Assembly: GCF_036365525.1 (NCBI RefSeq)
Contig: NC_090387.1
Coordinates: 88,577,691 to 88,641,690 of the forward strand
Reading direction: 5' to 3'
Length of the DNA: 64,000 bases
From: Heterodontus francisci
Taxonomy: Eukaryota
Both the position numbers and the translations under genes were made by a program. Of this stretch, positions 4,440 through 49,652 are shown piece by piece. Position 1 is the stretch's first letter. Each line of letters starts with the position of its first letter. The notes below the pieces were generated by a model. That model saw nothing but the letters and a program-made list of their open reading frames with translations. It made no database searches and was not told where the DNA came from.

Positions 4440-7215
4440 GGGATCCTGATGTTGTGGCCATTTCGGAGACATGGGTAGAGCAGGGGCAGGAATGGATGTT
4501 GCAGGTTCCGGGATTTAGATGTTTCAGAAAGAACAGAGAAGAGGGTAAAAGAGGGGGGGGGGGGGGTGTGGCATTGTTAATCAAGGAAAGTATTACAGCG
4601 GCAGAAAGGACGTTTGAGGACTCGTCTACTGAGGTAGTATGGGCCGAGGTTAGAAACAGGAGAGGAGAGGTCACCCTGTTGGGAGTTTTCTATAGACCTC
4701 CGAATAGTTCCAGAGATGTAGAGGAAAGGATAGCGAAGATGATTCTCGACAGGAGCGAGAGTAACAGGGTAGTGGTTATGGGGGACTTTAACTTTCCAAA
4801 TATTGACTGGAAATACTATAGTTCGAGTACTTTAGATGGGTCTGTTTTTGTCCAGTGTGTGCAGGAGGGTTTTCTGACACAGTATGTGGACAGGCCAACC
4901 AGGGGCGATGCCACATTGGATTTGGTACTGGGTAATGAACCCGGCCAGGTGTTCGATTTAGATGTAGGTGAGCACTTTGGCGATAGTGATCACAATTCGG
5001 TTAGGTTTACCTTAGCGATGGGCAGGGACAGGTATATACCACAGGGCAAGAATTATAGCTGGGGGAAAGGAAATTATGACGCGATTAGGCAAGATTTAGG
5101 ATGTGTAGGATGGGGAAGGAAACTGCAGGGGATGGGCACAAACGAAATGTGGAGCTTATTCAAGGAGCAGCTAATGCGTGTCCTTGATAAGTATGTACCT
5201 GTCAGGCAGGGAGGAAGTTGTCGAGCAAGGGAGCCGTGGTTTACTCAAGAAGTTGAAGCGCTTGTCAAGAGGAAGAGGGCGGCTTATGTTAGGATGAGAC
5301 GTGAAGGCTCAGTTAGGGCGCTTGAGAGTTACAAGCTAGCCAGGAAGGATCTAAAGGGAGGGCTAAGAAGAGCAAGGAGAGGACACGAGAAGTCATTGGC
5401 GGATAGGATCAAAGAAAACCCTAAGGCTTTCTATAGGTATATCAGGAATAAACGAATGATAAGAGTTAGAACAGGGCCAATCAAGGATAGTAGTGGGAAG
5501 TTGTGTGCGGAATCAGAGGAGATAGGGGAAGCGTTAAATGAATATTTTTCGTCAGTATTTACAGTAGAGAAAGAAAATGTTGCCGAGGAGATTACTGAGA
5601 TACAGCCTACTAGGCTAGATGGGATTGAGATTCACAAGGAGGAGGTGTTAGCAATTTTGGAAAGAGTGAAAATAGATAAGTCCCCTGGGCCAGATGGGAT
5701 TTATCCTAGGATTCTCTGGGAAGCCAGGGAGGAGATTGCAGAGCCGTTGTTGTTGATCTTCAAGTCGTCATTGTCGACAGGAGTAGTGCCGGAGGACTGG
5801 AGGATAGCAAATGTTGTCCCCTTGTTCAAGAAGGGGAGTAGAGACAGCCCTGGTAATTATAGACCTGTGAGCCTTACTTCGGTTGTGGGTAAAATGTTGG
5901 AAAAGGTTATAAGAGACAGGATTTATAATCATCTTGAAAAGAATAAGTTCATTTGCGATAGTCAGCACGGTTTTGTGAAAGGTAGGTCGTGCCTCACAAA
6001 CCTTATTGAGTTTTTCGAGAAGGTGACCAAACAGGTGGATGAGGGTAAAGCCATGGATGTGGTGTATATGGATTTCAGTAAGGCGTTTGATAAGGTTCCC
6101 CACGGTAGGCTATTGCAGAAAATACGCAAGTATGGGGTTGAAGGTGATTTAGAGCTTTGGATCAGAAATTGGCTAGCTGAAAGAAGACAGAGGGTGGTGG
6201 TTGATGGCAAATGTTCATCCTGGAGTTTAGTTACTAGTGGTGTACCGCAAGGTTCTGTTTTGGGGCCATTGCTGTTTGTCATTTTTATAAACGACCTGGA
6301 TGAGGGTGTAGAAGGGTGGGTGAGTAAATTTGCGGATGACACGAAGGTCGGTGGAGTTGTGGATAGTGTCGAAGGGTGTTGTAGGGTACAGAGGGACATA
6401 GATAGGCTGCAGAGCTGGGCTGAGAGATGGCAAATGGAGTTTAATGCGGAGAAGTGTGAGGTGATTCACTTTGGAAGGAGTAACAGCAATGCAGAGTACT
6501 GGGCTAATGGGAAGATTCTTGGTAGTGTAGATGAGCAGAGAGATCTTGGTATCCAGGTACATAAATCCCTGAAAGTTGCTACCCAGGTTAATAGGGCTGT
6601 TAAGAAGGCATATGGTGTGTTAGCCTTTATTAGTAGGGGGATCGAGTTTCAGAGCCACGGGGTCATGATGCAGCTGTACAAAACTCTGGTGAGGCCGCAC
6701 CTGGAGTATTGCGTGCAGTTCTGGTCACCGCATTATAGGAAGGATGTCGAAGCTTTGGAAAGGGTGCAGAGGAGATTTACTAGGATGTTGCCTGGTATGG
6801 AAGGAAGGTCTTACGAGGAAAGGCTGAGGGACTTGGGGTTGTTTTCGTTAGAGAGAAGGAGGAGGAGAGGTGACTTAATAGAGACATACAAGATAATCAG
6901 AGGGTTAGATAGGGTGGATAGTGAGAGTCTTTTTCCTCGGATGAGGATGGCAAACACGAGGGGACATAGCTTTAAGTTGAGGGGTGAAAGATATAGGACA
7001 GATGTCAGAGGTAGTTTCTTTACGCAGAGAGTAGTAGGGGCGTGGAACGCCCTGCCTGCAACAGTAGTAGACTCGCCAACTTTAAGGGCATTTAAGTGGT
7101 CATTGGATAGACATATGGATGTAAATGGAATAGTGTAGGTCAGATGATCGGCGCAACATCGAGGGCCGAAGGGCCTGTACTGCGCTGTAATATTCTAATG
7201 TAATATTCTTCTAAT
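4440..7215 (+). mobile_element. Young 5'-truncated CR1-clade LINE with 6-bp TSD (GATCCT)
   Basis: Uninterrupted ORF2, short 3' UTR, TAATATTC-type tandem tail at about 7188-7215. GATCCT at 4434-4439 and 7216-7221. Confidence 0.96.
4454..7138 (+). CDS. CR1 ORF2: N-terminally truncated APE endonuclease plus reverse transcriptase (894 codons)
   Basis: ISETW, GDFN, LDLVL and SDHN endonuclease motifs. NYRPVSLTS, DFSKAFDKV, GVPQGSVLGP and SKFADDTK RT motifs. Confidence 0.95.
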   Translation: MAISETWVEQGQEWMLQVPGFRCFRKNREEGKRGGGGGVALLIKESITAAERTFEDSSTEVVWAEVRNRRGEVTLLGVFYRPPNSSRDVEERIAKMILDRSESNRVVVMGDFNFPNIDWKYYSSSTLDGSVFVQCVQEGFLTQYVDRPTRGDATLDLVLGNEPGQVFDLDVGEHFGDSDHNSVRFTLAMGRDRYIPQGKNYSWGKGNYDAIRQDLGCVGWGRKLQGMGTNEMWSLFKEQLMRVLDKYVPVRQGGSCRAREPWFTQEVEALVKRKRAAYVRMRREGSVRALESYKLARKDLKGGLRRARRGHEKSLADRIKENPKAFYRYIRNKRMIRVRTGPIKDSSGKLCAESEEIGEALNEYFSSVFTVEKENVAEEITEIQPTRLDGIEIHKEEVLAILERVKIDKSPGPDGIYPRILWEAREEIAEPLLLIFKSSLSTGVVPEDWRIANVVPLFKKGSRDSPGNYRPVSLTSVVGKMLEKVIRDRIYNHLEKNKFICDSQHGFVKGRSCLTNLIEFFEKVTKQVDEGKAMDVVYMDFSKAFDKVPHGRLLQKIRKYGVEGDLELWIRNWLAERRQRVVVDGKCSSWSLVTSGVPQGSVLGPLLFVIFINDLDEGVEGWVSKFADDTKVGGVVDSVEGCCRVQRDIDRLQSWAERWQMEFNAEKCEVIHFGRSNSNAEYWANGKILGSVDEQRDLGIQVHKSLKVATQVNRAVKKAYGVLAFISRGIEFQSHGVMMQLYKTLVRPHLEYCVQFWSPHYRKDVEALERVQRRFTRMLPGMEGRSYEERLRDLGLFSLERRRRRGDLIETYKIIRGLDRVDSESLFPRMRMANTRGHSFKLRGERYRTDVRGSFFTQRVVGAWNALPATVVDSPTLRAFKWSLDRHMDVNGIV

Positions 7216-7257
7216 GATCCTCCTGCTTAGCAGCATTTACTGATGTTCCCTTCCCAC
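7211..7257 (-). CDS. Gene A exon 5: cytoplasmic exon interrupted by CR1 insertion (GGKGTSVNAAKQEDH*)
   Basis: Strong acceptor TTTTATTTCTCATCAG. Frame runs into the antisense LINE tail and stops at TAG 7213-7211. The last 2 exon nt and the GTAAG donor lie at 4433-4427 on the far side of the LINE. Confidence 0.75.
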
Positions 7258-7784
7258 CTGATGAGAAATAAAATTAAATGAATCACCAAGAACTGCGTTA
7301 TATTTCCATTCAGCACAAACGCCAAGGAAAATAAATGCAAATCTGTTATATGCCAGCTATAATAGGATCATTGTTTTCACAATGTTACTCAAACTGTTAA
7401 AATAGGGCGCAATGATTGTATTATATTTCTTATGATGAAGCTGTGTGAACATCATTGCATGCATGAAATTCACTAATAGAGGGTTAGAACTGCAGCAATA
7501 CAGTTTAGCAAATTATAACGGACAATCTGCTAAGTTGCCGTTTTGATCAATAATTTAGAGTTGAAGCAATATGTATGCTAAACAGTATTTTCTCATCAAT
7601 CTGTTAGTTAAATTGTCCCATTCAGCATTTCGCCTCCCAAATGTTAACTGTAATTATTTTAGTTTATACTTGCATGTAAATTGTTTGCTTCAGGATCAAT
7701 ATTTCCATTAATTTCAAATTTAAATAATGTGTTATAATATGCTGTTAGAAGCTAACCTATTAGGAAAGTGTGGATGGTTCATAC

Positions 7785-7898
7785 CTTTGGATATAATAAA
7801 TAGAATCCCCTTCACAATCAAAATGGCTAATAGGAGAACTACAAGTGCACCACGGGCACATCCAGCTATGATAACACCATCAACTTTAGAGGCACAAT
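7785..7898 (-). CDS. Gene A exon 4: connecting peptide and transmembrane segment (DCASKVDGVIIAGCARGALVVLLLAILIVKGILFIISK)
   Basis: TCTCATAG acceptor, AAAG|GTATG donor, phase 1/1. Hydrophobic stretch that aligns with the gene B TM exon. Confidence 0.85.
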
Positions 7899-8785
7899 CT
7901 ATGAGATTGACATAAAATCAAAATTAGAAATAGGAATGTAAAACGGATATGCAAAGATCTAAATGCTATATACAATATATTATATTTACAGTACATAAAG
8001 CCTCAATAGATCCATTTCATTATCTCTCAATTTAGCTGATGTGTTTTCAGTCTGACACTAAGTTTGAGACACTGTAATCCGGAGAAATGGCAGCAATGAG
8101 AAATCAATATGATCAATTCCTTACCGAATAGTACTCGAATATGTATCTAGAATAAGTGTTCTACTACTTGAAACATTCGGAAAATAATAAATACGTTGTG
8201 TGTTTCATCGGATTAGCCTGTTGCTCAAACTCCGAAAAATGTTATAATGGGGCGTATTTACACATTCATTTGAAATTCTCTTCGCAGCAATGTTTCACTC
8301 AGGCCGTTTTCCATCTTTAAACATGTGCCACCAAATTAACTATCATTCCATGTTTGGTATAGCGTCGAGGGAGTTGCATACTGAAGAGCGGGGACTGAAC
8401 TTGGACTACTTGATGGCTGCAGGTGTGTGCAAAGCTTCACTTACTCTACTCCAACCTTCCAGTCCATATGAACCTTTCTGGTGTATTGAATGATCACTCA
8501 CCGTGCCCTCCCTTTGTTAATTGAAATGTTCAGGAGTTAATCTGAATTATGGGAAGTATTTTGAGCTAATGTCATCTATTGGCTAAGCTGCTTGTGTCCA
8601 ACCTACTTCTCATCCGATCCAAATAACCAAAAGAAATGGAAACTACACCCAAACAACCGGACCAGAGTTCGGCGTCGACAAAATAAAATGCAAACTCCTG
8701 CAGTAATCACCTCCCACAGATTCTTGTATATACCCATTTGTACGATGATCTCGCGATTAAATTACCTCATCTCATATAATGTTAC

Positions 8786-9094
8786 CTTCGTTAGAAACTG
8801 TGTAGCTGGCATTTGCTGGAATTAAGTTAGAAACGTGAAGTACTTGACAGGTGTAAACTGTGCTGCGATCGATTGCCTGTGACACTTTCAAGCAACTGAT
8901 AACTTCATAGAGTCCCTCCGGGGTCTTTGTCTGTTGTTCATTCGTTAATCCAGTCAAGAGTTCCATATCGTTTTTATGCCAGCTGAGGTTAAAGTCCTTC
9001 GGGTAGAAAGCAGATGTTCTGCACTGGAGACTCAGAGGAGCACATGTTACCCCTTCAGATGGTAGGGATAAGATTTTCAGCGGAGCTGGTGTAG
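8786..9094 (-). CDS. Gene A exon 3: C1-set Ig domain
   Basis: Open frame ATPAPLKIL...LSLQCRTSAFYPKDFNLSWHKN...EGLYEVIS...YTCQVLHVS carries the C1 hallmarks (C-x4-FYP, W, YxCxVxH). AAG acceptor and G|GTAAC donor, phase 1/1. Confidence 0.92.
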
Positions 9095-9917: not shown

Positions 9918-10229
9918 CATATACAACCAGTTGCACACCAGTTGTTTCTCCAACTGTATGATACTGGTATTTGGTTACACAGTAATACGTTCCAGCGTCC
10001 GGGACAGTCACATTCAAGAGGTGAAGGTACGCGCCGCCTCTCTTTACACTGAAGAGTTTTCTGTTGTCCTCTTGCAGAAAGGTCTTATTACCGTCTCTCC
10101 ACCAATAAACGATCACGTTTGAATGGTTGAGATTAAAGGAGAAAGGACATCTCAAAATAACATTTGTACCTCTGAGCGCCTTCTTTTCTATAATATCAGG
10201 AGTCGCATTACCCGAGGTGCCCACAGCAA
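9918..10229 (-). CDS. Gene A exon 2: V-set Ig domain with joined J-like G strand
   Basis: TTTGTTGATAG acceptor and G|GTATG donor, phase 1/1. Protein has VILRC, VYWWRDG, LHLLNVTVPDAGTYYC and TVGETTGVQLVVY, i.e. the B-strand Cys, C-strand Trp and DxGxYYC motif. Confidence 0.93.
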
Positions 10230-10570: not shown

Positions 10571-10625
10571 CTGGATACATAATGCCTAGAAAACATATGC
10601 CGCATAACACCCCATTCATAACCAT
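10571..10625 (-). CDS. Gene A exon 1: leader peptide (MVMNGVLCGICFLGIMYP-), phase-1 donor
   Basis: ATG at 10625-10623, 18 mostly hydrophobic codons plus G, then GTATAT donor. Same 55-nt length and phase as the gene B leader exon. Confidence 0.7.
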
Positions 10626-10965
10626 GTCGTCATTCACAATACGGCAGATCAGGCGTTGTGACTGAGAACGGAATGGAGAAAGAGTTGTAGAATAGATGCC
10701 TAATGTTATCCAATGCAGATCTGTGAGGTCAGGCAGCACATGACTGGTTAATTGCAGAGTGAAAAAATGTATGCCTTTTGGAGTAAGATCTACCGACTGG
10801 GCTGTGACCGGAAACAGCAAAAGGAACTAGGCGGCTGTCGCTGCAGCAAACTAGGAGGCAGAGGAGAGGGTGGTGGGGGTTGGTAATTTGTACATGCGAT
10901 ACCAAGTCCATAACTCATCGTTTGTTCAGCCGCCATTTTGTTTGCGCAGAATCTGTTTAATTAAT

Positions 10966-12146
10966 GGCTGCATTTGCTGACAACGCTACCTCTAGGTGGC
11001 GCTGCAACGGCACATGCGCAAATGCAGCATGTGCCACAAAAACGTCGCAGTCTGTGACTTCAGGCTCAAATAATCACACGAAGGCAACCAAGACTAAACA
11101 CATGGCAGCAAACAATAGCGAGAAGGAGAGAGTAAACGAGCGAGCGGCCCGGCCCGGAGTGGTGGGAGCAGAGCGGGCTGGGGAAAGAGTGGAGCGGCCG
11201 GAGAGAGCAGCGCGTGGGGGAGGGGGCGGGGGAGAGTTCAGTGGCCAAAAGAGCAGCGAGGTGGGGGTGGGGGCGGGGGAGCGGAGTGGCTGAAAGAGCG
11301 GAGCGGCCTAGTGAGCAGTGAGGTTGGGTGAGCGGAGCGCCCGATACAGCGGAGCAGCCTGAGAGAGCAGTGAGGGTTGGTGAGCAGAGCGGCCGAAAGA
11401 ACGGAGCGACTGGACAGAGCAGCGAGGCGGGGGTGGGGTGGGGAGTGGAGCAGCTGAAAGAATCACTTGATTCCTGAAAACGCATCTGGCCGCAGACGTC
11501 ATCAGGCTGCACCAATGTGTGCGGATGCGTAGACGGGCTCCTGCACTCAGCGCATGCACTGCGTTCCGACTTGCCAGGACTGGTTAGTGCATGTGCCGAT
11601 GACGTCATCGCATGACATGTGCATCTTTGGGAAACGCACCTAGTCAGCTTCTGCGCACGCGCTATACGCGTAACAGCAATGCAACGCCAACGGGTATTCA
11701 CACATGCGTCAAGCTCTGCTCACCTCTTTCAACCTCGCTGCTCTCTCCAGCCACTCCGCTACACCCCCCACCCCCCGTCCCAACCCTCACCCTCTTCCAG
11801 CCGCTCCACTCTTTCGGCCAGTCGGCTCCCCGACCCCCTCGCTTTTCTCGCCAGCCGCTCCACTCTTTTGGCCACTCCACTCTCCCTCGTTCCTGGCCCG
11901 CTACACTCCGCACCACCCCCTGGCCCCGGATTGCTTTCCCCACACCCCCCCCCCCCCTAACCCCAGGCCCCGGCCAGCTCGCTCGCTCTCTCCCTCTCAC
12001 CATTGTGTGCTGACATGTGTTTAGGTTAGGTTGCCTTTGTGTGATTGTTTGAGCAGCAGACTGTGGCCGTTTTAATGGCACATGTTGCATTTGTGCATGT
12101 GCCACTGCAGCGCTACCTCATGGTAGCGTTGTTAGCAAACGCAGCC
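10966..12146. mobile_element. About 1.18-kb foldback/MITE-like palindromic element
   Basis: 10966-11160 is the imperfect reverse complement of 11965-12146. The left arm carries GAGTGGAGCGG repeats and the right arm CCGCTCCACTC repeats. Confidence 0.75.
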
Positions 12147-12745
12147 TGCTCCAGTGAACATAAACGCAAGATCGAGGAACAGCATCACATTTACCGACTA
12201 GGCACAATACAGCCTGCCAGACTGAACACTGAGTTCAATAATTTCAGAGCTCGACGGGCCCCCCATTTTACTTTTATTTTTAGTTATTTTTTTCTTTTTT
12301 CTTTTGTTAATTTTTAAATATATTTTGTGTTTATTTTATTTTATTCATCTTAGTTTGTTCAGTTTGCTTTCCCACTGTTTTTTTCATGTTTGTACTTGTG
12401 GCTGTTCAATTTATAGTCCATTAACACCCTATCTGTACTAATGCTTTGTCTTTCAACACACCATTAACATATTGTTTGCCTTTGCTCCATGACCTTCTGA
12501 TCAGCTTTTCTGTGACCTTGTCTTATTAACACCTTCTCATTTGTTATCTTTTGCCCCACCCCTGCTTTACTTGCTTAGAACCTTTTACATTTCTAATATT
12601 TGCTCGTTCTGAAGAAGGATCACTGACCTGAAACGTTAACTCTGCTTCTCTCTCCACAGATGCTGCCAGACTTGCTGAGTATTTTCAGCATTTCTTGTTT
12701 TTATTTCAGATTTCCAGCATCCGCAGTATTTTTCTGTTATATTAC
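12147..12745 (+). mobile_element. Penelope-like element 3' fragment (GIY-YIG C-terminus plus 3' region)
   Basis: CSSEHKRKIEEQHHIYRLGTIQPARLNTEFNNF. Colinear with copies at 23460-24450 and 50245-51680. Confidence 0.85.
12606..12640 (+). ncRNA. Minimal type I hammerhead ribozyme motif
   Basis: GTT-CTGAAGA-AGGATCACTGACCT-GAAACGTT-AAC contains both core boxes, stem II and a palindromic stem III. Confidence 0.65.
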
Positions 12746-12749
12746 TGTA

Positions 12750-14545
12750 TTCAATGCCTTCACAGTTTACAAAATCTTCTCACAACTGCTTGTGCTTATT
12801 TAAAACAAACTAAAAATCCTCTTGTTTTATGGAATTATGGTAAGCAGGAAAAGAGTGAAGAGTTTTTGAACACTCAGAAGAAACTGCTTATTCTCATTTA
12901 CTCTATGATATTGAGGAATTTCAAAGTGGACTAGGAGTTTCCAAAATCTCGAATTTGCAGGACTAGACTAACACATTTCTCTATGAAATGTACTTCGCCA
13001 TTTTTGAAGAGAAAGCCAAATGAAACCTTGAAGGAAATTTAAAAAGCTTATCTCTGATCAAAGGCAATAGTTGATGATTTGTTCCACTGTCTGTGAAGGA
13101 CAAAGCAAAGCATTCATTGGCATGGGCCTGCCGAAGCAGGGAAAAGCTTTGTTTACAACATTCACATACATTGAGCTAAAGGAGTTGCCGTTTTGCCATA
13201 CGCTTCGACTGGTACAACCTCTATTCTTCTCATTGGAGGTTGAACAGCATATTCACTTCTTTAAAAAATTCCATTCGCAATTCATGAGTTTTTGACATGT
13301 TAATTGAAAATAAATGAAGTGAAGCAGAACCTATTAGTCAGCGTTTCTTATATGGGATGAAGCTCTATTGATGCCAAGATATTTTTCCTGGCGGTAGATT
13401 GTTTACCTCAAAGTTTAATAAGTAATGATCCTAGATTTGGAGGGAACATCGTTCTGCGAGGAGGTGATTTTCGACAGCTCCTACCTGTTATTTCTAGCGT
13501 ATCGAGAGGACAAATTATAGGAATTTGATTCTGATCATGGTGGAAGCAACACAATGTCAATTCAGTCCCATCATTCCACAGGTCACAGTATGTTTCTCTA
13601 ACATTTCACAGTGGCGCAGTGGTTAGCACCGAAGCCTCACAGCTCCAGCGACCTGGGTTCAATTGTGGGTACTGCCTGTGTGGAGTTTGCAAGTTCTCCC
13701 TGTGTCTGCGTGGGTTTTCTCCGGGTGCTCCGGTTTCCTCCCACAAGCCAAAAGACATGCAGGTTGATAGGTAAATTGGCCATTATAAATTGCCCCTAGT
13801 ATAGGTAGGTGGTAGGGAAATATAGGGACAGGTGGGGATGTGGTAGGAATATGGAATTAGTGCAGGTTTAGTATAAATGGTTGATGGTCGGCACAGACTC
13901 GGTGTGCTGAAGGGCCTGTTTCAGTGCTGTATCTCTAAACTAAACTAAACAAAAGCAATATATGGCCACAATTGTGGAAATTCAAAACTGAAAAATAAAT
14001 GTGAGAGTAACACCCAAACAAAAACTGTTTCAGATTGATTGTGTAAATTTAGGATGGAAAATTGTGAAAGGCAATTGAAACATCAGAGAACTGTTCTTTA
14101 TTCCGAGGAGTTAAATTGTTTTAATTTCCTATTTAGTTAAAGGATTTATGTATTTGATAAACTTTATTATTATAATGCTATTCTCTATGGTATAAAAGGA
14201 AATTTAGTTAGATGTGAGTACAAAGATTTTGGGAAAGTGCCATGTGGATTAAAAGTATACATTCGTGTTAACTCTATCGACAAAGAGGATGACAACTGTG
14301 TGTACCCCCAGAGTTTCTGCACAGTCTAATGGGCATACCAGTACAAAAGACCTGGACTCAAGGAAGGAGCACTTATAATGTTGCTACATAATTTGAATCC
14401 CAAGCAGACTTTCTCAAGGGACAGGTTTGAGAGTTTGGAAGCTGTTTCCTTCGCTGGTAGATTCTAAAATTGAAACAGCCAGAATTTAAGACAATAACAT
14501 TTTTATTCTTTGGATAATATTATTGAGGCTTTCAGTGGTAAAAAT
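12750..14545 (+). mobile_element. Helitron Rep/Hel fossil, PIF1-like helicase part 1 (frameshifted, SINE-interrupted)
   Basis: GPAEAGKSFVY (Walker A, about 13123), LIWDEA (about 13347), FGGNIVLRGGDFRQLLPVI (about 13436), LKEGALIMLLHNLNP (about 14357). Confidence 0.85.
13607..13950 (+). mobile_element. tRNA-derived V-SINE (HE1-like)
   Basis: A box TGGCGCAGTGG, B-box-like GGGTTCAATT, central GTGTGGAGTTTGC...GGTTTCCTCCCAC domain, CR1-like tail, (CTAAA)n end. Confidence 0.88.
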
Positions 14546-14549
14546 TGCT

Positions 14550-17295
14550 TTCCATTTCAGGGGAAAACTGTGACTCCAGGCACAGAGAAATGTGGTTGGC
14601 TGATAAACTGCCCTCTGTAATGGCCTAGCAAGCCACTGAGTTATATCATACCACAACAGGAAAGTCGAATAATAATAAAACTAGCTGAGTCATCCTAGAT
14701 GAATCTAGGGATAAGAGTCCATAAAGACACAGCTGCCTAGTCGACACTTCCAAGTCCTCCTCAATGGCATCTAGGGACTTGTACCAAAAATTTCGAGAGC
14801 TCTCCACAGGCAACTCAGATGACAGCCTGACATAGTCATACTCAACGAATTACTATCGTGCGTATGTTCTATCGCACCAGCAGGATAGATCCAGCAGAGG
14901 TCGTGGCAGATTGGCATATGGTTTGGGGAAATTGGCCCTGCGACCTCTTAGCATTAAATCCGGCTCCCATGTAGTCTGATGGTACAGGTTAAATATGGAC
15001 AAGAAAAACTGCTGCTGATTAGCAACTACTAGCCTCCCTCAGCTGATGCATCAGTGCTCATTCATGTTCAACCCCACTTAGAACAAATACTGAGATTAGC
15101 AAGGGCACAAATTGTATTTTGAGTGGAGGACATAAAATTCCATCATCAATAGTGGCTCTGTAGCACCACTACCAATCACACAGGCTGAATTCAGAAAGAT
15201 ATATCTACCAGACAGGGCCTGTGGGAGGGCGTGTGTGAACCAACACGTGGGGAAAACCCACTTGTACTCTCCCTCACCAATCTACCACGTGCAACTGCAT
15301 CTGCCCATGCCAGAATTTGTAGAAGAGACCACCACACACTCCTTTTTCAGACATAGTCCTGCGTTCACAATAAAGAACGTCAGCATTTGGTTGTGTGGCA
15401 CTACTGTCGTGCAAAATGGAGCAGACTTAGAATAGATATAGCAGCTAAAAGCTGGATATCCAGGAGACACTGTGGGTCATCATCAACAGCAGAATTGAAT
15501 TCACTCATAATCTGTAACCTCATGGGCCAGCACTCTACCATTACCATTAAGTTAGGAGGTGAACCCTGGTTCAATGAGAAGTGTACAAGAGAATGTCTAT
15601 AGTAGCAACTGGCATACCTAAAAATGAGGTATCAACCTGGTGAAGCTGCAACACAGGACTACATGCATGCTAAACAGAAGAAGCAGCATGTGATAGACAG
15701 AAATAAGTGGCCCTACAATCAATAGATCAGCTCAAAGCCCTGTCACATCTAAACTTATTTGATGGTGAAAAATTAAACAACGAGCAGCAAGAGGAGAACG
15801 CTCCACAAAAATCTTCATCTTCGATGATAGAGTAGTCCAGCACATAAGTGCAAAGGGCCAGGCTGAAGCATTTGCAACCATTTTCACCTGGAGCTGCCGT
15901 GTGGATGATCCATATCGGATCTTTCCTGAGATCTAAACCATCATTGTTGCCAGTCTTCAGGCAACTCTATTCACACCAGGTAATAATAAGAAGTAGTTGA
16001 AGGCACTGGATAAAGCAAAGGTTGTCGTGCCGGATAGCATGCCGGCTGTAGTACTGAAGACTTGTGCTGCAGAAGCAGCTCGACGTGAGCTAAATCGTTT
16101 CACTATAGCTATAACACAAGCATCTGCCCGAAAATATAGAAATTGCATAGGTATATCCTGCCCACAAAAAGCAGGAAAAATCTAATCAAAGCAGATACCG
16201 CCCTCTCAGTCTACTCTTAACCATCAGCAACGTAAAGGAAAGTGTCATCAACAGTGCAATCAAGCGACATTTACTCAGAAACAAACTACTCACTGATGCT
16301 ATGTTTGGATTCTGCCAGGGGCACCGTGGTCAAGACTTTATTACAAACTTCGTCCCAACATGGAAAAAGAGCTGCATTCCAGAGGCGAGGTGAAAGTGAC
16401 TGCCTCTGAGATCAAACGCAGTTAATTCCAGGAATGGCATCAAACAGCTCTAGCAAATTTTGAGTCAATGCAAATCAGGGAGAAAACGGTCCACTGCTTG
16501 GAGTCAAACCAAGCACTCAGGAATATGTCTATGGTTGTTGGAGGCGAGTCATTTCATACCAGGACATTATAGTAGCAGTCTATGCCTGTATGCAGCAAGC
16601 CCTGAATGACATTCAGAGTTGGTATGATAAATGACAAGTAACACTCACACCGCACCAGTGGCGACCAATGACCATCCCTTGCAAGCGAGAATCGAATAAT
16701 CTCCCCATGACATTCAACAGCATTCCATCGGGGAGGTTTCCAGCATCACCATCCTGGGGGTTAGCGTTGATCAGAAACGTAACTGGACCAGATATATAAA
16801 TACTGCAGCCAAATGAGCAGGGCAGACGTTCGCGATGCTGTGGCGAGTTATTCACCTCTTGACTCCCCAAAGCCGGTCCACCATCTACAAGACTCAAGTC
16901 AGGAATGTGATGTAATACTTAGCACTTACATGAATGAGTGCACTCAAGAAGCTCAGCATCATCAAGGCAAAGCAGCCCACTTAATCGGCACCCCATCTAC
17001 CACCAGCATTGCACAGTGACAGCAGTGTGTTCCACCTACAAGTTGCAGTTCAGTAACTCACCAAGCCTACTTCAATAGTACCTTGCAAGACGGCAACCTC
17101 TCTCAGCTATATGAGCAAGCCTCGCAGACGGATAAGAACAAAACCAAATAACACACCATCCTGACCTGCAACTATATAGTAGATTTACCTACACAGAATT
17201 GAGTGCAGAGGTTCAAGAAGGTGGCTTACTACAATCTTCTCAAGGGCAATTGGTTATGAATAATAAATGCTGGTCTTGCCAGTGACGCTCACCTC
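14550..17295 (+). mobile_element. Old non-LTR retrotransposon, second family (CR1/L2 superclade), heavily decayed
   Basis: Fragments EPWFNEKC, KALDKAK..PD.MPAVVLKTCA, R.LSLL and W..TL.P..W. Related copies at 20880-22190, 52580-58150 and 61920-62835. Confidence 0.75.
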
Positions 17296-23459: not shown

Positions 23460-24450
23460 GAAGGAAACAGCAGATGAGATATCGTTCCTTCCGTGACACC
23501 CTGGTCCACTCCTCCATTACCCCCACCATCTCATCCCCTTCCCATGGAACCTTCCCCTGCAATAGCAGGAGGTCTAATATCTGCACATTTACCTCCTCTT
23601 TCCTCACTATCGCAGGCACCAAACACTCCTTTCAGGTGAAGCAGCGATTTACTTGTACTTCTTTCAATGTAGTATACTGTATTCGCTGCTCGCAATGTGG
23701 TCTCATCTACATTGGGCAGACCAAACGCAGACTGGGTAACCACTTTGTGGATCACCTCCACTCAGTCCGCAAGCAGGACCCCGAGCTCCCAGTTGCTTGC
23801 TATTTCAACACTCCCCCCTGCTCTCATGCTCACATCTCTGTCCTGGGATTGCTGCAGTGTTCCGGTGAACATCAATGCAAGCTCGAGGAACAGCATCTCA
23901 TTTACTGATTAGGCACTTTACAACCTGCCGAAGTGGACATCGAGTTCAATAATTTCAGAGCATGACGGACTCCCCATTTTACTTTTATTTTCAGTTATTT
24001 TATTTATTTTTCCTTTATATATATATAGTTGTGTTTATGTTATTTTATTTCATCTTAGTTTGTTCAGTTTGCTTACCAACTGTCTTTTTCATGTTTGTAC
24101 TGGCAGCTGTTCAATTTACAGTCCATTAACGCCCTATCTGTACTAATGCTTTGTCTTTCAACACACCATTAACATATTGCTTGCCTTTGCTCCACGTCCT
24201 TCTGGTCAGCTATTCGATGACCTTGTCCTGTTAACACCTTCTCCTTTGTTATCTCTTGTCCCACCCACGCTTTAATGGGTAAGAACCTTTTACATTTCTA
24301 ATATTTGCTCGTTCTGAAGAAGGGTCACTTACCTGAAACGTTAAATCTGCTTCTCTCGCCACAGATACTGCCAGACCTGCTGAGTATTTCCAGCATTTCT
24401 TTTTTTTTTTCAGATTTGCAGCATCCACAGTATTTTGCTTTCATTATAGC
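23460..24450 (+). mobile_element. Penelope-like element fragment with GIY-YIG endonuclease
   Basis: ORF 23474-23908 FTCTSFNVVYCIRCSQCGLIYIGQTKRRL. Hammerhead motif at 24311-24345. Confidence 0.9.
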
Positions 24451-39224: not shown

Positions 39225-39279
39225 ATGTTGGCGAGTGTAGTATTTCATTGCCTCGCTGTTCTGGTTGGCATTCTCACAG
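39225..39279 (+). CDS. Gene B exon 1: leader peptide (MLASVVFHCLAVLVGILT-)
   Basis: ATG at 39225, 18 hydrophobic codons plus G, CAG|GTACC donor, phase 1. Confidence 0.85.
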
Positions 39280-39451: not shown

Positions 39452-39772
39452 GCTTCGGCGAAACTTCAGTCAAAGTGACTCAGCTCCCTGAGAGCACAAG
39501 CAGAAACACGGGTACAAACGTTTCCTTTCATTGCACGCTCCCCTTCTCTCAAGATGGTCCACGTGTAAACATATACTGGTGGAAGGAGGGTGCTAATCAA
39601 TATCTAAGCGCGGAACAAGATGACAGAAAAGTAATCGGCTTCAAGACTAAATTCAGCGGCTTCCATCAGATTAGTAATGTGAGTGTCGAGGACGCAGGCA
39701 TATATTATTGCACTGTCGCCCATCGAGACAAAATCGTTGGAAACGGCACAGGTTCCAACTTAGTTGTCTGGG
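39452..39772 (+). CDS. Gene B exon 2: V-set Ig domain with germline-joined J-like motif (GNGTGSNLVV)
   Basis: Polypyrimidine TTTTCCTATAG acceptor and G|GTAAG donor. Protein has VTQLP, VSFHC, IYWWKEG, ISNVSVEDAGIYYC and VGNGT. Confidence 0.95.
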
Positions 39773-40809
39773 GTAAGTAGAAAAAATAACGGCGAATGAG
39801 ATCCCAGCAACAGAGGTATTATTCGGTAGTGCGTTTAAAAGTTCACATTACAAATAAGTTTCCAATCTTTTCATATGTATACATTCTTATTTGACAGTTG
39901 ATGGCTACATTTCATATTTTATTATGCATTGCAATATTTCAATAATATTAATTATGATGAGCAGTATCCGATAATAGATTTACTAAAATTACACAGTTGT
40001 CCTATAGGAAACAGGCATTAGAGTTAAAATTGCAGGATCAGTAAAGCACGTGAAAAACTCAACTTCATTACTTACGAGAGTGGGTCTGCTAGCCTGCACA
40101 CATATTTCATCTTACATGATGGCTTATTTGTTTACTTGCTTACGGAGGCATGAACTTTTCTATTGAGATTCAGATTTGCGCACTTATAGTTTAATACTTG
40201 GTATGTTAAGATCTTTGAAAGCCCATATTATTAACAAGTAACGTCTGTTTAAGCCTCCCACTCTATACTTGCATCATGTAATTGACTTGCAGTAAGCAAC
40301 AAATCATACTAAACCTTCGTGCCCAAGCCACTCTCTCATGGATACATTATACTTTCTAAGCAATTGTTATACTGTGCGAAATGAGATTGGTCAGCAGCGC
40401 TTTCGCATAGCAAGTGAAAAGCAGTCGGAAGCCTGATTTGCAATCCACTTAATGTTATTTCGCATTAGAAAATCAAATAATGCGAGTGTAAAACGGGCGG
40501 CCCATTTACTATTACCCGTTCTTCGTCTGGAGGTAAGTTAAAATTACTGCCGATATTATGTTGACCTTTATGACGAATTTACTTGAGATGCAGCTACCAA
40601 GGGCGCATAATGAAAATCCATACCCAATCCACACCACCGCGATTCCACCACCCCCCTTCACCCCACACGCCCCCTCCATCCCCGCACCACCCCCCCCCCC
40701 CCCCCACCCCCCACCTCCACATGGTAGTGCCGGGAATGTTATCAGCAAAACGTTGGTTTTCTAACTTTGCATGATGTTCAAGTAACGTTGTTTTCCTCCA
40801 TTTACCTAG

Positions 40810-41121
40810 TTCCGCCAACTCCACTGAGAATTAAGTCTCAGCAAGATCAAAATGATTCATTTGCATCTCTAGTTGTTTTGTGCGTAACATCTCCATTTTA
40901 CCCGAAGAATATCAGCTTTACTTGGTATAAGGATGGCAGAAAAATTGCATCAAGGATAAATAACATTATTGAACTCAAGACCGATGGATTATATGAAGCT
41001 TCTAGCCGGTTGCAAGAGGCGCAGAGTGTCCGGACTGGAACTGTTTATACTTGCTCAGTCTCTCACAGTACCCTCCATATTTCAGCCACGGCCACTCACA
41101 TTGTCACCTATACAAACACAG
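40810..41121 (+). CDS. Gene B exon 3: C1-set Ig domain
   Basis: VPPTPLRI...VVLCVTSPFYPKNISFTWYKDG...TDGLYEASSRL...YTCSVSHSTL. TAG acceptor, CAG|GTAAG donor, phase 1/1. Confidence 0.95.
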
Positions 41122-43148: not shown

Positions 43149-43259
43149 GTGGTGAGCTCACCCGCTGCCAACTGATTTCTGCAGCTAGATGGGGCGGGTT
43201 GGTATTACTGGTGCTGGGTCTCCTCATTGCAAAGCAATGTATCTCAAAGATAAATAAAG
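43149..43259 (+). CDS. Gene B exon 4: connecting peptide and transmembrane segment (GGELTRCQLISAARWGGLVLLVLGLLIAKQCISKINK)
   Basis: TGTTGCAG acceptor, AAAG|GTAGG donor, phase 1/1. Hydrophobic segment homologous to gene A exon 4. Confidence 0.88.
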
Positions 43260-43394: not shown

Positions 43395-43700
43395 TGTTTA
43401 CTTAGAGATACAGCATTGAAACAGGCCCTTCGGCCAACCGAGTCTGTGTTGACCAACAACCACCCATTTATGCTAATCCTACATTGATCCCATATTCCCT
43501 ACCACATCCCCTACCTACACTCGGGGCAATTTACAATGGCCAATTTACCTATCAGCATGCAAGTCCTCGGCTGTGGGAGGAAACCGGAGTACCCAGCGGT
43601 AACCCACGCGGTCACAGGGAGAACTTGCAAACTCCACGCAGGCAGTACCCAGAACTGAACACGGGTCGTTAGAGCTGTGAGACTGCGGTGCTAACCACTG
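43395..43700 (-). mobile_element. V-SINE (HE1-like)
   Basis: Reverse complement of the SINE at 13607-13950. Confidence 0.85.
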
Positions 43701-44356
43701 TTAAGCTTAACTAAGATTTGCAAAGTTAATAATTAACAACGGCCATAGGTTTCATTTTACTAAAGAAAGTTCAATTTCCAAACAGAAAGAGGAAGAACTT
43801 CCTGTTACATGTTGAGACATGGTTGGTTGTTTACAACTGAACGGTTCCAACAATAGTTAGTTAGTTTACCCACAGTAACAGTGCGATTGCTGAAGATAAA
43901 GTTTATTCTGAGTTTTAAGATATACGGGTTCCTTCACATTCACCCCAACCATCTGCATTTACATAGATTGAAACATCTGATTTATTGAATATGGTTTCCA
44001 TCACGACCGGTGTTGGGGTAGATTCAAATTTCTAAAATGGTGTGCTATTTTCCAAGGTCCTTCAGCCACCGGCTGAGATTGGAACGCCAATGAGGCTTTA
44101 TTACGAAATCTATTTTCATTTCCTGAGATTTTACAGCATTAGGGGGAATACACGTAAAATTATGGGAAGTGCCCAAGGGACTTTCCAGTTAGACTCTTGG
44201 TGGCCGACCGGCATCTGAACAATTCCGCTCCTATTTTCAGAAGTTGGTCGGAAACCAAGCAGTCCCTTAAGAGGTGATATCTAGATTATGTTGTAATTTA
44301 CATTGAGCCTACCATAAACTGATCATCGTAAATTCTTGAACTTCATACATTACGAG

Positions 44357-44400
44357 AAGTGCAGAACGATGGCGAAAGATGCGACTATCCTGAGCAGAAG
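44357..44400 (+). CDS. Gene B putative exon 5: 44-nt cytoplasmic exon (EVQNDGERCDYPEQK)
   Basis: Open, phase 1 to 0, AAG|GTATG donor. Same length and phases as the reconstructed gene A exon 5. Acceptor is weak (tandem GAG/AAG). Confidence 0.5.
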
Positions 44401-44999
44401 GTATGATTCCACAATTTATTCCACATTACTTGAATATAGATATAGCCATAAAAGAACTGCAATTTATTTAATACAATCATTATCATGTTTTATTCTATTG
44501 ATGTAAAGGTTAATACAAAATAGGACAGACTGAATTTGGGGTCAGGCAACAGTAAACATTTTTGTCATTGTGTCAGAGACAACTGAATTGTAACTGCCGT
44601 TTTCCAGTTATGATCATACTAATTAAAAGTTACCACACAGCGTACAGTGTTTTGGTGTGTTGTCAATTAGCTAATTCTGGAATAAATACAGAACACACAA
44701 TTTCAAATCCTAACATGCTAGTTTGCTCTTTTTAAAATCAATTTTCAAAATCTATTAGCAGAATATGGTAGTTATGAAAGTGACTATGAAGCTGTCAGAT
44801 TGTCGGAAAATCCATAGTGGTTTGCTAATGCCTCTCGGGGAAGGAAACCTGCCGTCATTAACTGGTCCGTTTTTTCTGTGACTCCAATCCACACTAATGT
44901 GGTTGGCTCATAAAGTCTACGTGGGGTCTCCTCACAGCTCTACCAAAACGTTTCTTGGGCAACCAGAAATAGGACATACTAATTGCTGTTGCCAGCTGT

Positions 45000-45950
45000 A
45001 ACCAACATAACTGCGGTGCATTTGCGATCGATGCCTTGGTTTATGAAGCCCAAGATCCCATATGCTTTCCTAACCACTCTCTCAATATATATTTCCACAT
45101 TCAAAGATCAATGTACATGCACTGGCGGCCCCCTGTTACTGCACAGTCGTTAGAACTGCGCCATTAATTCTACATTTCTTCACCTTTCTGGTAAAATGCA
45201 TCACCTCATATTCGTTTGTATCAAATTCCATCTGTCAGTTGTCTGCATATTCTGGTACCTTATCTATGTCCTGTTGTAAACGGTTCCAATCATCCCGATG
45301 TTTGCCACATTTGGTATCATTGGCACATTTTGAAATTCTATTCCGTAGAATAAGCAGGAATCAATTAGGCAAGGGAATTGTACCTTACTTTCGTTACGTA
45401 GGTATTGCAGTGCAAAACGGCATTGGTGAGGCCAAAACTGCGGTATTGTGTACAGTTTTGGACTCCTTCCCAAAAGAAGGAGAGCGTTGCCATAGAGGGA
45501 GTGCTACAAAATGTCACTATACTGGTTCCTGGAATTAAGAGATGATTCTTATAGGAGTGAGTGAGTAGACGAATGTGAAGTGATCTAATTGAAGCATATA
45601 AACGTATAAAGTTTGTTTTTAAAGGAAGTAAGAAATTTGATCCAAAACAAAAAGATTTCAGTGGCTGGGCAATCTCGAACATGGGGTCACATTCTGAGGA
45701 TAAGGATTCGGTGACTCAGGACTGAGATGAGAATTGTTTTCTAGCAAATGGTTTGAATCATCGGAATTCTCTACCCCAGAGAGCTTAGGATGCTGAAACG
45801 TTGGTTGCATTCAAAGAATATGCCAACGGATTTTCGGGTATTAAGGGAGCTAAAGAGCATTGTTCGAGTGTGGGAATGTGGAGTTGAGGTAACAAATCAG
45901 TCATGATTTTAATGAATGCCAGAGCAGGCTCGAAGGTACCAATGACTTAC
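45000..45950. mobile_element. Two old CR1 fragments in opposite orientation (minus about 45000-45340, plus about 45390-45950)
   Basis: QMEFDT...EVMHF on the minus strand. LVRPKLRYCVQFWTP and 3' UTR on the plus strand. Confidence 0.65.
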
Positions 45951-46128
45951 ATTTTTTCTTTTTTTTTCGTTTTTTTTAATATTCTTCAGTAAGTAGGTTT
46001 TCCAGAATGTTTGCTCGACATTTGGTCTCCACTTATATACTTAATTAAAATTTGTCTCCGTCCATGGGTCGTCAGGGTTTAACTTACAGTCAAAGAAAGA
46101 GAGATGAGCATTTATATAAATAGGAAGG

Positions 46129-46185
<57 letters not shown>
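46129..46185 (+). repeat. (TAGA)n microsatellite, about 14 units
   Basis: Directly visible. Confidence 0.97.
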
Positions 46186-46499
46186 TGTTATCGACGTAGT
46201 TATTGTGACATTATGGATAAATTAAACGCTGGAAGTGGGATCTTATGTAATCTAGGAAGTGACTGTCAAACTTTAATATGATTTCTTGTGCTCCATGTTC
46301 TGATCATTGCAGAATTTTATTTGCTGTTTACTTGCCTGGACAGTGAAAGTGATCTGACTGCTGTGACTCCCAAATACCTTCCTGTCGCCCTGTCCTAAAT
46401 CAAGTCCATCTCGTTACTTACAACACACAGTCTCAAAGTATGTGGAAAAACTCAACGTTGTAAAATAATCCACATGCCTTCACTATATTTTTGCCGCAA

Positions 46500-48500
46500 C
46501 AGAACATACGAATATACGTACGAACATTCGAATTAGGTGCAGCAATAGTCCACTCGGCCCCTCAAGCCTGCTCAGCCATTCAATAAGTTGATGGCTAACC
46601 TGGTTACTCCATATTATCACGCGATAGCCTGTCACCAAATTCCTTATCGATGATCTATCTACTTTCTATTGACATAGCTCTGCAATGTCTCACGAGGTAG
46701 ATAATATGTTTCTTTGTTATTCTTCCTGCCAAAATAGATAACTTCCCATTTTCCCACATTATACTCGATCTGCCATTTGTTTGCCCACTCACTTAACCTA
46801 TCTATATCTCTTTGTAGCCTCCTTATGTCCTCTGCACAACCTGCTTTCCTAAACATCTTTGTGGTATCATCAAATTTAGCAACCAAACCTTCGGTCCCTT
46901 CATCTAAGACATATATAAGCACAGCTGCCTGTGGCACACCACTCGTTACATCTTGCCAACCATAAAATGAACCATCTATGCGTACTGCCTGCTCCCTGTT
47001 AGCTAGCCAATCTTCTACTTCCATCCATTAGTTTTTTTTTAGTTTAGAAATACAGCACTGAAACAGGCCCTTCGGCCCACCGAGTCTGTGCAGATCATCA
47101 ACCACCCATTTATACTAATCCTACACTAATTCCATATTCCTACCACATCCCCACCTGTTCCTATATTTCCCTACCACCTACCTATACTAGGGGCAATTTA
47201 TAATGGCCAATTTATCTATCAACCTGCAAGTCTTTGGCATGTGGGAGGAAACCGGAGCACCCGGAGGAAACCCACGCAGACACAGGGAGAACTTGCAAAC
47301 TCCACACAGGCAGTACCCAGAATTGAACCCGGGTCGCTGGAGCTGTGAGGCTGCGGTGCTAACCACTGTGCCACTGTGTAAGATTAGTGTAAATGGGTGG
47401 TTCAAGGTCGGCACAGACTCGGTGGGCCGAAGGGCCTGTTTCAGTGCTGTATCTCTAAATAAATAAAAAATAAATAAATTAGTTTTATATTTTGCAATGC
47501 AGTTTGATATGGCACCTTATCAAATGCCTTCTGGAAATCTACGTACAATACATCCACCGGTTCCCCTTCATTCACAGCACATGTAACTCCCTCAAAGAAC
47601 TCCAATAATCAGGTTAAACATGATTTCCCTTTCACAAAGCCATGTTGACTCTGGTTGATTACCTTCATTTTTTCTAAGTGCTCTGCTCTCACATTTTCAA
47701 TAATAGCTTCCAACATTTTCCTTCACAAAGATGTTAAGCTAACAGGCCTGCAGTTTATTGGTTTCTGCCTCCCTCTCTTTTTGAATAAAGGAGTTGCATT
47801 CACTATTTTCCAGACAAGTGGAACCTGCCCCGAATGTAAGGAATTCTGAAAAATTAAAACGAACGCATCAACTGTCTGACTAGCCACTTCTTTCAACACC
47901 TTAGGGTGAAGTCCATCAGGACCCGGGGACTTGTCAGCTCGCAACTCCAAGAATTTGTTCAGTATACTTTCCTGGTGATTGTAATTTACTTGAGTTCCTC
48001 CGTCCCTTTCATTTCCTGACTTACAGACAATTCTGGAATGTTACTTGTATCCTTTATAGTGAAGACCGATTCATCTGCCATCTCCATATTAACCATTATT
48101 AATCCCTCAGACTCACTTTCTGAAGGACCAACGTTCACGTTGTTAATTGTTTTCTTTTTTTTAATATCTATAGAAACTCTTACGATCTGTCTTTATATTT
48201 CTAGCTAGCTTTCTCTCGTACTAAAATGTTACCTGCCTCATCGATCTTTTAGCCAATCTTTGCTGTTCTTTTTTAAATTCTGTCCAATCTTCTGACCTGC
48301 CCCATTTTTGCGTAATTTTATGTTATTTTCTTTAAATTTGATACTATCTTTAACTGTTTTAGTTAACCACGGATGGTGGATCCCACCCCCTACCGCCCCA
48401 CCCCCCCCCCCGCAACCACCACCAACCACCCCCCACCCCCTTCCCACCCTTGAAGCTTTACTTTCTCGTTGAAATACATCCACTCTCTGTAGTCTGCGGT
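46500..48500 (-). mobile_element. Degenerate CR1 LINE with nested SINE
   Basis: DKSPGPDGLHPKVLKEVA, RPVSLTS and VTSGVPQ...VAKFDDTTK motifs. Confidence 0.86.
47030..47480 (-). mobile_element. V-SINE (47040-47376, minus) plus inverted second tail (about 47375-47478, plus)
   Basis: Full SINE on the minus strand followed at once by a plus-strand copy of its last 85 or so nt. Confidence 0.87.
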
Positions 48501-49204
48501 GTAACTTCAGTTATATAAATATTACCAGCAGCATATTTCTTTGAACATACAAGTTCTATCAAGTTCTATCAATGGACAACAGTGAAGAACTTTGATTTTT
48601 TATTTTCTTTATTCTCTTGACCTATAAATTTCATGGATTTTCCGGAAATTCTGTGAGATATCCGTGGAACACTCACAGAACCAACTTAAATAGCATTTGC
48701 AGCCTATTGCAGTGTTTCTACAGGATTTATGGTTGTCACCCAGCGAAGTGAAATCGGGAGACCGGTTGTAGCTCTATGGAATTTGCAGATTGTTTACAGT
48801 CTTTCACGCTTGGGCGTTAAGCAATGATTGAGCGGAGCAGAAAAACTGAACATTTAGATCGCTCCACCCGAGAAAGTATCATTGCATTCACTTTACTGTT
48901 TGGAAAATGGGTCGATTTTTTCAATCCCGTTCAACGCTGATGATTAATTTTCAGGCCCGAAAGACTATAACCTTCCCTCAAACTGCCCTGAATGTTTTTG
49001 TTAATAAGACTGATTCAGCCTCCTGAGCGCTGATGGCGCAGAGATAATGCGCAGACAGTGATGTTCTGGCCTGCAGTGACTGATATTTCAATCATTTCTT
49101 TAATGATTTGACTCTGGTTTTCTGGCCAAGTCTCATCCTTATGCACAGAAAGCACCGAACCACGGTATCTGCTCTAACAAAATTTACATATTTGTGTCTT
49201 GCAG

Positions 49205-49311
49205 TCAATCAGAGAGCAGCCGATGTGACGGCACCTTATGCTGCACCAGATACGACCAATTTCTGGAAAGCTCCAAGACCAAAGCCTCAAGAAAAGATCG
49301 TGTATGCCAAG
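49205..49311 (+). CDS. Gene B cytoplasmic exon (VNQRAADVTAPYAAPDTTNFWKAPRPKPQEKIVYAK)
   Basis: TTTGTGTCTTGCAG acceptor, with an alternative in-frame CAG acceptor giving a start at 49213, and AAG|GTAGG donor. Contains two Tyr motifs. Confidence 0.72.
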
Positions 49312-49523
49312 GTAGGTTGGAGATACATGCCTAACGGAAAATGAATAATTTCAATTCACACGTTATGCAGTTTAGTATATGAAACGTCCTAAATGCTAAA
49401 ATAGTAATCTGTTGCATTTAACGCTAATTCTGCGAGGCTCTATCTATTCCAATAACTACTTAACAGTGGACTACAGTCAGATAAAACATGCAACTAATGA
49501 TATTCGCAAAATTGATTTCACAG

Positions 49524-49652
49524 ACCAACCAAAGGTCACCGGGTAATAAACTGACCCAAGCTGCTCTTGATATGACAGGCTTAAAGGGAACAGCAACGCC
49601 TAATTGTAACGACACCAGCACGGAGTTTGCTCAGGTTCGGATGGAAAAGTAA
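49524..49652 (+). CDS. Gene B terminal exon (TNQRSPGNKLTQAALDMTGLKGTATPNCNDTSTEFAQVRMEK*)
   Basis: TTTCACAG acceptor, phase 0, open to TAA 49650-49652. Resembles the ITIM/ITSM-bearing end of SIRP-type tails. Confidence 0.75.
   Translation, partial: TNQRSPGNKLTQAALDMTGLKGTATPNCNDTSTEFAQVRMEK

Follow-up and report, generated by a model that had tools for sequence, protein, structure and literature searches.

SIRPs are the mammalian "don't-eat-me" receptors, and as they join a V(J) domain to C1-set domains, a kinship with the antigen-receptor precursor has been suggested for them. SIRP-alpha is inhibitory, whereas SIRP-beta is activating and signals via DAP12. The 2009 study of the SIRP-alpha structure remarked that SIRP genes were yet to be identified in organisms that predate adaptive immunity (PMC2785349). 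Elasmobranchs possess non-rearranging VJ-C1 genes, UrIg and UrIg2, the first with three C domains and a secreted product and the second with 9-11 C domains (PMC12227049). The DNA analysed here is a 64,000-nucleotide stretch of the Heterodontus francisci genome (contig NC_090387.1, positions 88,577,691 to 88,641,690; hereafter the window), which contains two divergently oriented genes, gene A on the minus strand and gene B on the plus strand, each encoding a V-set domain, a C1-set domain and a single transmembrane (TM) segment. Both are members of a chondrichthyan SIRP-like multigene family, and they are probably activating-type copies of an inhibitory two-gene module represented by their paralogues A' and B'.

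Genes A and B follow the same plan of leader, V-set, C1-set, stalk/TM and cytoplasmic exons (Table 1). The original prediction, made from the letters of the window, had described them as two divergent paralogues, and all the exon sizes that it listed are found in the sequence. The reading frames are open and the splice sites canonical in all 12 exons of the two genes, with phase 1 throughout the Ig exons and canonical AG/GT borders. The identity of 38% between the V domains and 37% between the C1 domains characterizes A and B as paralogues. The motifs proposed to be common to the two genes are present: YWW[RK]xG (VYWWRDG in A and IYWWKEG in B), a J-like strand within the V exon, a Cys in the stalk and an Arg within the TM helix (CARGAL in A and AARWGG in B). 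The J-like strand of gene B, GTGSNLVV, conforms to the GxGxxLxV pattern and to the family consensus NGTGSxLxV; that of gene A, TTGVQLVV, has lost the first Gly and is degenerate. The criteria for C1-set domains applied to domains d2 and d3 of SIRP-alpha are the motif (F/Y)(F/Y/H)P, a spacing of exactly 13 residues from the B-strand Cys to the C-strand Trp, and the motif xVxH following the Cys of the F strand (PMC2785349). The corresponding hallmarks in genes A and B are FYP and 13 residues from Cys to Trp in both, with CQVLH in A and CSVSH in B. No CACAGTG or CACTGTG heptamer occurs within 400 bp of either V exon, and a window-wide scan for heptamer-spacer-nonamer arrangements with up to three nonamer mismatches returned none, in agreement with the predicted absence of recombination signal sequences (RSS). 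Their description as non-rearranging V(J)-C1-TM genes is borne out; each V exon runs into a GT donor.

Each of the two genes has a closer paralogue, probably elsewhere on the same chromosome: A' (P0098, XP_067905931) for gene A and B' (P0205/P0179, XP_067905932/933) for gene B. Genes A and A' share 17 of 18 residues of the leader/N-terminus and are 94, 86, and 81% identical in the V, C1, and TM parts, respectively. A' has a full tail and a Gly at the position of the TM Arg of gene A (AGCAGGAL vs. AGCARGAL). The exons of gene B were compared singly, with B' (P0205) taken as a proxy for the whole B chain. Their identity is 100% in the leader, 97.2% in V, 99% in C1 and 100% in cytoplasmic exon a (14 of 14 residues), and falls to 83% in both the TM and the last exon. 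Changes cluster in the TM and tail, where they affect 17-19% of residues, and are few (1-3%) in the ectodomain of gene B. They include an Ala in the TM of B' in place of the Arg of B (ISSAAWGG vs. ISAARWGG), and the tyrosine motifs LTYAAL and TEYAQV of the last exon of B', which is 14 residues longer than that of B with its LTQAAL, TEFAQV and early stop. In exon b, gene B has APYAAP where its relatives have APYAEL; the use of this exon in gene B is predicted from homology, and isoform X1 of B' skips it. Since A' and B' both lack a TM Arg and carry tyrosines of the immunoreceptor tyrosine-based inhibitory motif (ITIM) type, and the reverse is seen in A and B, the window most likely represents the activating-type copy of the module. 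None of the B-type relatives compared has an Arg at the position of the Arg of gene B, and most A-type relatives lack one at the site of gene A (in Stegostoma P0168 and Hemiscyllium P0166 it is one residue off); for this reason the Arg looks derived in B and is probably derived in A. The consecutive accession numbers of A' and B' indicate that they are probably neighbours, forming a second copy of the A/B module, and numbering also suggests a third A-type/B-type neighbourhood (XP_067906071-74 with 6077-86).

The tail of gene A is cut off by a CR1-type long interspersed nuclear element (LINE), whose insertion site is 2 nt short of the 3' end of the 44-nt cytoplasmic exon a; a 6-bp target duplication lies on either side of it (4434-4439 and 7216-7221). 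Of the original exon, 42 of the 44 nucleotides remain at 7216-7257, and the following His and TAG stop are LINE-derived. Removal of the LINE in silico restores an exon of 44 nt that ends with ...GAT CGG (...EDR) before the donor, comparable to ...ADR in A'. The intact open reading frame (ORF) of the LINE makes it look young, and it is possibly still active.

Family members were collected by searching the V exon of gene B against 1.8 billion representative proteins, which yielded 74 relatives at E < 1e-10; gene A itself corresponds to H. francisci RefSeq protein XP_067905013.1. The relatives come from 15 or more chondrichthyan species comprising sharks, rays, and a chimaera. The genera represented include Scyliorhinus, Mustelus, Heptranchias, Stegostoma, Chiloscyllium, Hemiscyllium, Rhincodon, and Cetorhinus, together with Pristis, Hemitrygon, Hypanus, Mobula, Narcine, Amblyraja, Leucoraja, and Callorhinchus. 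Most are V-C1 in layout. No published description of a chondrichthyan V-C1 SIRP-like family was found in a limited literature search, and to this extent the proposal of an uncharacterised family stands; RefSeq, however, already contains models of gene A and dozens of relatives, most of them named automatically as [quoted passage not shown] (SIRP-alpha-like) or "SIRP beta-1-like", with stray names such as Ig lambda-like, tapasin-related and class II beta-like. The B-type protein P0003 of Amblyraja radiata (XP_032892405.1) has a near-exact duplication of its C1 domain, giving V-C1-C1; this is either a route to the three-domain layout of SIRPs or an artefact of the gene model.

The sole match outside the Chondrichthyes in the protein search was rodent SIRP-alpha (E 1.5e-11). 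BLAST comparison of full-length members with rodent SIRP-alpha aligns their V domain with d1, their C1 domain with d2/d3, and their four tail tyrosines in the same order and at the same spacing. When the tails are aligned to the SIRP-alpha tail by themselves, five of six family tails give z-scores of 6-10, and none of 2000 composition-preserving shuffles reaches the score; the A' tail is weaker (z 2.6). A profile built from 38 family members gives a contiguous match of 111 bits to the SIRP-alpha ectodomain (2wng) that spans both V and C1 and ranks fourth in the PDB behind multi-C-domain chains. The family is therefore read as related to the SIRPs, its ectodomain consisting of two domains, V and C1. 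On this reading the genes do not form a new antigen-receptor-like class. The original prediction had named SIRPs for comparison only, whereas the tail tyrosines of the family match those of SIRP-alpha one for one.

The features shared with SIRPs are a V-set domain that is joined in the germline, includes a J-like strand and precedes a true C1-set domain, a single-pass TM segment, the order and spacing of the four tail tyrosines in the inhibitory members (evident in B' and other relatives, weak in A'), and the existence of paired forms, near-identical in the ectodomain (86-99% here), of which one combines a short tail with a basic residue in the TM. Gene B retains only remnants of the four tail motifs, and the tail of gene A is truncated by the LINE. 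The basic residue differs in kind and place: here it is an Arg within the outer third of the TM helix, in SIRP-beta a Lys at the centre. The outer-third position resembles that in receptors coupled to FcR-gamma or CD3-zeta more than the central Lys of SIRP-beta. Also unlike mammalian SIRPs, the chondrichthyan family has undergone a large lineage-specific expansion into several old lineages.

In the tree of V domains, gene A falls in a 13-member clade of sharks and rays with support of 100/100, and gene B groups with sequences of catshark, Mustelus, stingray, and skate, split from the rest with support of 99/94. The C1 tree is concordant, recovering 13 of 13 members of the A clade and a set of six rows that holds B. 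Because both groups span sharks and rays in both trees, A-type and B-type genes are old and separate lineages. Members with an embedded Arg and members with an ITIM are found in each of them, and the short-tailed forms with an Arg occur in both lineages in several species. Among 80 family proteins, an embedded TM Arg is associated with the absence of an ITIM (odds ratio 3.6, p 0.03 in an automated Fisher test that ignores relatedness and misclassifies some juxtamembrane Arg). The median tail in the same 80 proteins, again regardless of relatedness, is 33 residues in those with a TM Arg vs. 80 in the others.

RNA was compared over the gene B stretch in three runs of one sample, skipping 40676-40723 as a repeat. 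One run (X1) yielded a 604-nt contig spliced at 39771/40809, 41118/43146, and 43260/44358, and the V/C1 joint 39771/40809 is also present in run X2. The V/C1/TM/exon a junctions of a B-like mRNA are thereby confirmed. The original prediction had made the gene models depend on spliced transcripts; these exist with the expected junctions, but their letters are those of B'. In the TM exon of the contig, 43187-43189 reads GCA (Ala) instead of the AGA (Arg) of the window, and the 115 nt of this exon contain 12 mismatches in all. Since the contig carries B' letters throughout, B' is expressed, and the spliced RNA is not assignable to gene B. At site 39633, a second variant with the base of the window makes up about two thirds of the depth, at a position that does not separate the two proteins. 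Genes A and B themselves may be expressed as well.

These data are probably best explained by the following history. The ancestral form of the family would have had a four-tyrosine tail of SIRP-alpha type, with ITIMs and motifs resembling the immunoreceptor tyrosine-based switch motif (ITSM), and would have inhibited through SH2 phosphatases. The window would hold one copy of a module of an A-type and a B-type gene, the second copy, A'/B', probably being located elsewhere on the same chromosome. Gene A would have lost its tail because of the CR1 insertion near the end of its first cytoplasmic exon, and gene B through an earlier stop together with substitutions that put Gln and Phe in place of Tyr, and Pro in place of Leu, in three of the four tyrosine motifs; both would have gained an Arg inside the TM helix. 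The products of A and B could then serve as activating counterparts, combining nearly the same ligand-binding ectodomain with a TM Arg that would contact an adaptor carrying an immunoreceptor tyrosine-based activation motif (ITAM), of the FcR-gamma, CD3-zeta or DAP12 kind, and A', B' and most of the family would be inhibitory members recruiting SH2 phosphatases by their tyrosine tails. By analogy with SIRP-beta relative to SIRP-alpha, an activating function is most likely; coupling to an adaptor is suggested by the same analogy, and the change presumably ran from inhibitory to activating. The paired-receptor system suggested for this locus is retained in that inhibitory-type and activating-type forms both occur, but the pairs are A/A' and B/B' rather than A/B.

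Several observations weigh against this reading. SIRPs have two C1 domains (V-C1-C1) and the genes of the window one. V-domain searches give SIRP no rank above other V-sets, and a Foldseek search of the PDB with the AlphaFold model of A' (ectodomain pLDDT, the per-residue confidence score, above 90) did not single SIRP out, returning generic V-C two-domain proteins such as ICOS-L, light chains, BTN, and PD-L1; the SIRP link comes, for that reason, mainly from the tail and the overall architecture. In an underpowered test on phylogenetically independent pairs, Arg and ITIM loss changed the same way in 3.6 pairs and the opposite way in 0.5, with a median p of 0.25. The adjacency of A' and B' has accession numbering as its sole basis. 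Wherever a site is diagnostic, the RNA contigs agree with B', gene B was not found among the RefSeq proteins matched, and gene A, its LINE being young, may be no more than an inhibitory gene that was broken recently. The last three points would also fit a history in which A and B are decaying, non-functional duplicates of A' and B', with a neutral LINE insertion, neutral Tyr losses and TM changes, and a near-identity of the ectodomains left by recent duplication or gene conversion rather than by selection. Such decay is plausible for gene A in particular because of the young LINE that cuts its tail, and the broken tail motifs and premature stop of gene B would be expected from it. As an account of both genes it appears unlikely, given open frames and canonical splice sites in every exon, the clustering of changes in the TM and tail with few in the ectodomain of gene B, and a RefSeq model that treats gene A as coding. 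It also leaves the embedded Arg to have been gained independently in both genes, in gene B by two base changes in one codon, and other species show the combination of Arg and short tail again, in both lineages.

The activating-type interpretation concerns each gene and its own paralogue. A different arrangement would be a germline TCR-like heterodimer of one A-type and one B-type chain, held together by the C1 domains and the stalk Cys, the genes being kept adjacent and their signalling mode switched together. A-type and B-type genes do lie side by side in the window and, by accession order, also in 5931 with 5932-37 and in 6071-74 with 6077-86; a stalk Cys and a TM Arg are present in both window genes, with the Arg absent from both A' and B'; and the usual partner of a C1-set domain is another domain of C1 type (PMC2785349). 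Against it stand 5' ends at least 23 kb apart with transposons between them and hence no bidirectional promoter, unequal copy numbers in H. francisci (at least five B-type vs. about three A-type genes), and the fact that mammalian SIRPs are not obligate heterodimers. A complex prediction of the A ectodomain (P0089, residues 153-364) with the B' ectodomain (P0205, residues 19-236) scored 0.25 against a mark of 0.34 and is counted for neither side. Pairing of this kind is accordingly considered improbable, and its fuller version, a disulfide-linked germline V-C1 heterodimer that would be a structural analogue of the T-cell receptor (TCR) and exist in an inhibitory (A'/B') and an activating version (A/B, with two TM Arg), slightly more so. 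The co-regulated two-chain receptor of the original prediction is not upheld: no positive evidence for it emerged, and the distance of at least 23-28 kb between the 5' ends of A and B, filled with transposons, excludes a shared or bidirectional promoter.

An origin of the genes within the UrIg/UrIg2 or another antigen-receptor-precursor lineage, with the SIRP-like tail arising by convergent use of ITIMs, is the least probable of the readings considered. In its favour, UrIg2 is the best PDB match of both single C1 exons (9dmx, E 1e-19 and 3.5e-17), and like A and B the UrIg genes are elasmobranch, with a single-exon VJ domain and C1-set domains. The top ranks of UrIg2 and of Ig heavy chains are due to the summing of scores over multiple domains: that of UrIg2 adds up three C domains, the best of which reaches 32.7 bits (independent E-value 6e-7). 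Genes A and B pass from one C1 exon directly to a TM exon, in contrast to the several C domains of UrIg and UrIg2 and to the secretion of UrIg, which is made in the liver; neither UrIg nor UrIg2 has been described with an ITIM tail or paired forms. The four tail tyrosines, moreover, agree with SIRP-alpha in order and spacing and not in motif alone.

Two further known systems share parts of this architecture. NKp30 (NCR3), of which shark homologues exist, has a V domain of VJ type, encoded by a single exon and joined directly to the stalk and TM, and couples to CD3-zeta or FcR-gamma by a TM Arg, but it lacks both the C1 domain, present as a C1-set exon in genes A and B, and the four-tyrosine tail. 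TCR and Ig light chains have the same V-J-C1 order, phase-1 exons and a membrane-proximal Cys, and TCR chains also have basic TM residues; genes A and B differ from them in having neither RSS nor a separate J segment, the V exon continuing straight into its donor.

If the affiliation with SIRPs is correct, the oldest living jawed vertebrates possess a large SIRP-like family in the minimal V-C1 layout found in TCR and light chains, already diversified into old lineages and showing the inhibitory/activating pairing known from mammals. The window would then offer a natural example of inhibitory receptors turning into the activating type by two routes in neighbouring genes, transposon truncation in A and point loss of tyrosines in B, with an Arg appearing in the membrane helix on both. 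This would be of use to comparative immunologists and involves no new principle.

Table 1. Exons of genes A and B and the LINE insertion, with positions counted from the first nucleotide of the window
Feature	Positions	Strand	Length	Remarks
Gene A, leader exon	10571-10625	minus	55 nt	MVMNGVLCGICFLGIMYP; phase 1 donor; read directly
Gene A, V-set exon	9918-10229	minus	312 nt	Degenerate J-like G strand; GT donor; Pfam V-set E 4.4e-8
Gene A, C1-set exon	8786-9094	minus	309 nt	Pfam C1-set E 4.2e-12
Gene A, stalk/TM exon	7785-7898	minus	114 nt	Stalk Cys and embedded Arg (AGCARGAL)
Gene A, cytoplasmic exon a	7214-7257, then TAG 7211-7213	minus	44 nt	Length as now read
Gene A, remainder of exon a	4430-4433	minus		Last 2 nt and orphaned GT donor (GG/GTAAGA)
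Gene A, upstream exons of RefSeq model	15404-15541 and 13171-13260	minus		Located by tblastn with P0089
Gene B, leader exon	39225-39279	plus	55 nt	
Gene B, V-set exon	39452-39772	plus	321 nt	J-like strand GTGSNLVV; GT donor; Pfam E 1.2e-10
Gene B, C1-set exon	40810-41121	plus	312 nt	Pfam C1-set E 9.2e-13
Gene B, stalk/TM exon	43149-43259	plus	111 nt	Stalk Cys and embedded Arg (ISAARWGG)
Gene B, cytoplasmic exon a	44357-44400	plus	44 nt	EVQNDGERCDYPEQK
Gene B, cytoplasmic exon b	49213-49314	plus		Tyrosine motifs 1 and 2 (APYAAP; IVYAK/T); located by tblastn with P0006/P0158/P0176
Gene B, last exon	49524-49652	plus		Remnants of motifs 3 and 4 (LTQAAL, TEFAQV) and earlier stop
CR1-type LINE	4440-7215	plus		Intact 894-aa endonuclease/reverse-transcriptase ORF; Pfam RVT_1 E 6e-36, Exo_endo_phos E 5e-14

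The RefSeq protein of gene A (P0089) is identical to the exons read here at 99% of the V positions and 100% of the C1 and TM positions, and ends with ...AAKQEDH. It carries an N-terminal extension of 152 residues encoded by 13171-13260, 15404-15541, and 10626-10802 on the minus strand. As A' begins at the downstream Met of MVMNG..., this extension is probably 5' untranslated region read as protein, and the annotated start is probably wrong. The first intron of the RefSeq model contains a 52-bp tandem repeat (11267-11435), situated within a GC-rich stretch (10964-12105; 52% vs. about 41% nearby) with Pro/Ser/Arg-rich ORFs overlapping on both strands, which may be a CpG island, a promoter remnant or a repeat.

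Searched by tblastn, the window yielded no V or C1 exon beyond those of A and B, and its gene content consists of A and B only, in addition to transposons. ORF fragments with a GIY-YIG-like motif (…CSQCGLIYIGQTKRRLG…) are repeated at 23474-23908 (plus), 50657-50959 (minus), 63098-63388 (minus), and 12045-12317 (plus), several of them decayed copies; such fragments are typical of Penelope-like retroelements. The V-C1 intron of gene B contains a long C-rich homopolymer-like tract (40640-40720). In the intron between the TM exon and exon a of the same gene, a short element (43400-43800) reaches an RNA depth of about 1-3 x 10^5 in all three runs and is either highly transcribed or a very high-copy repeat.

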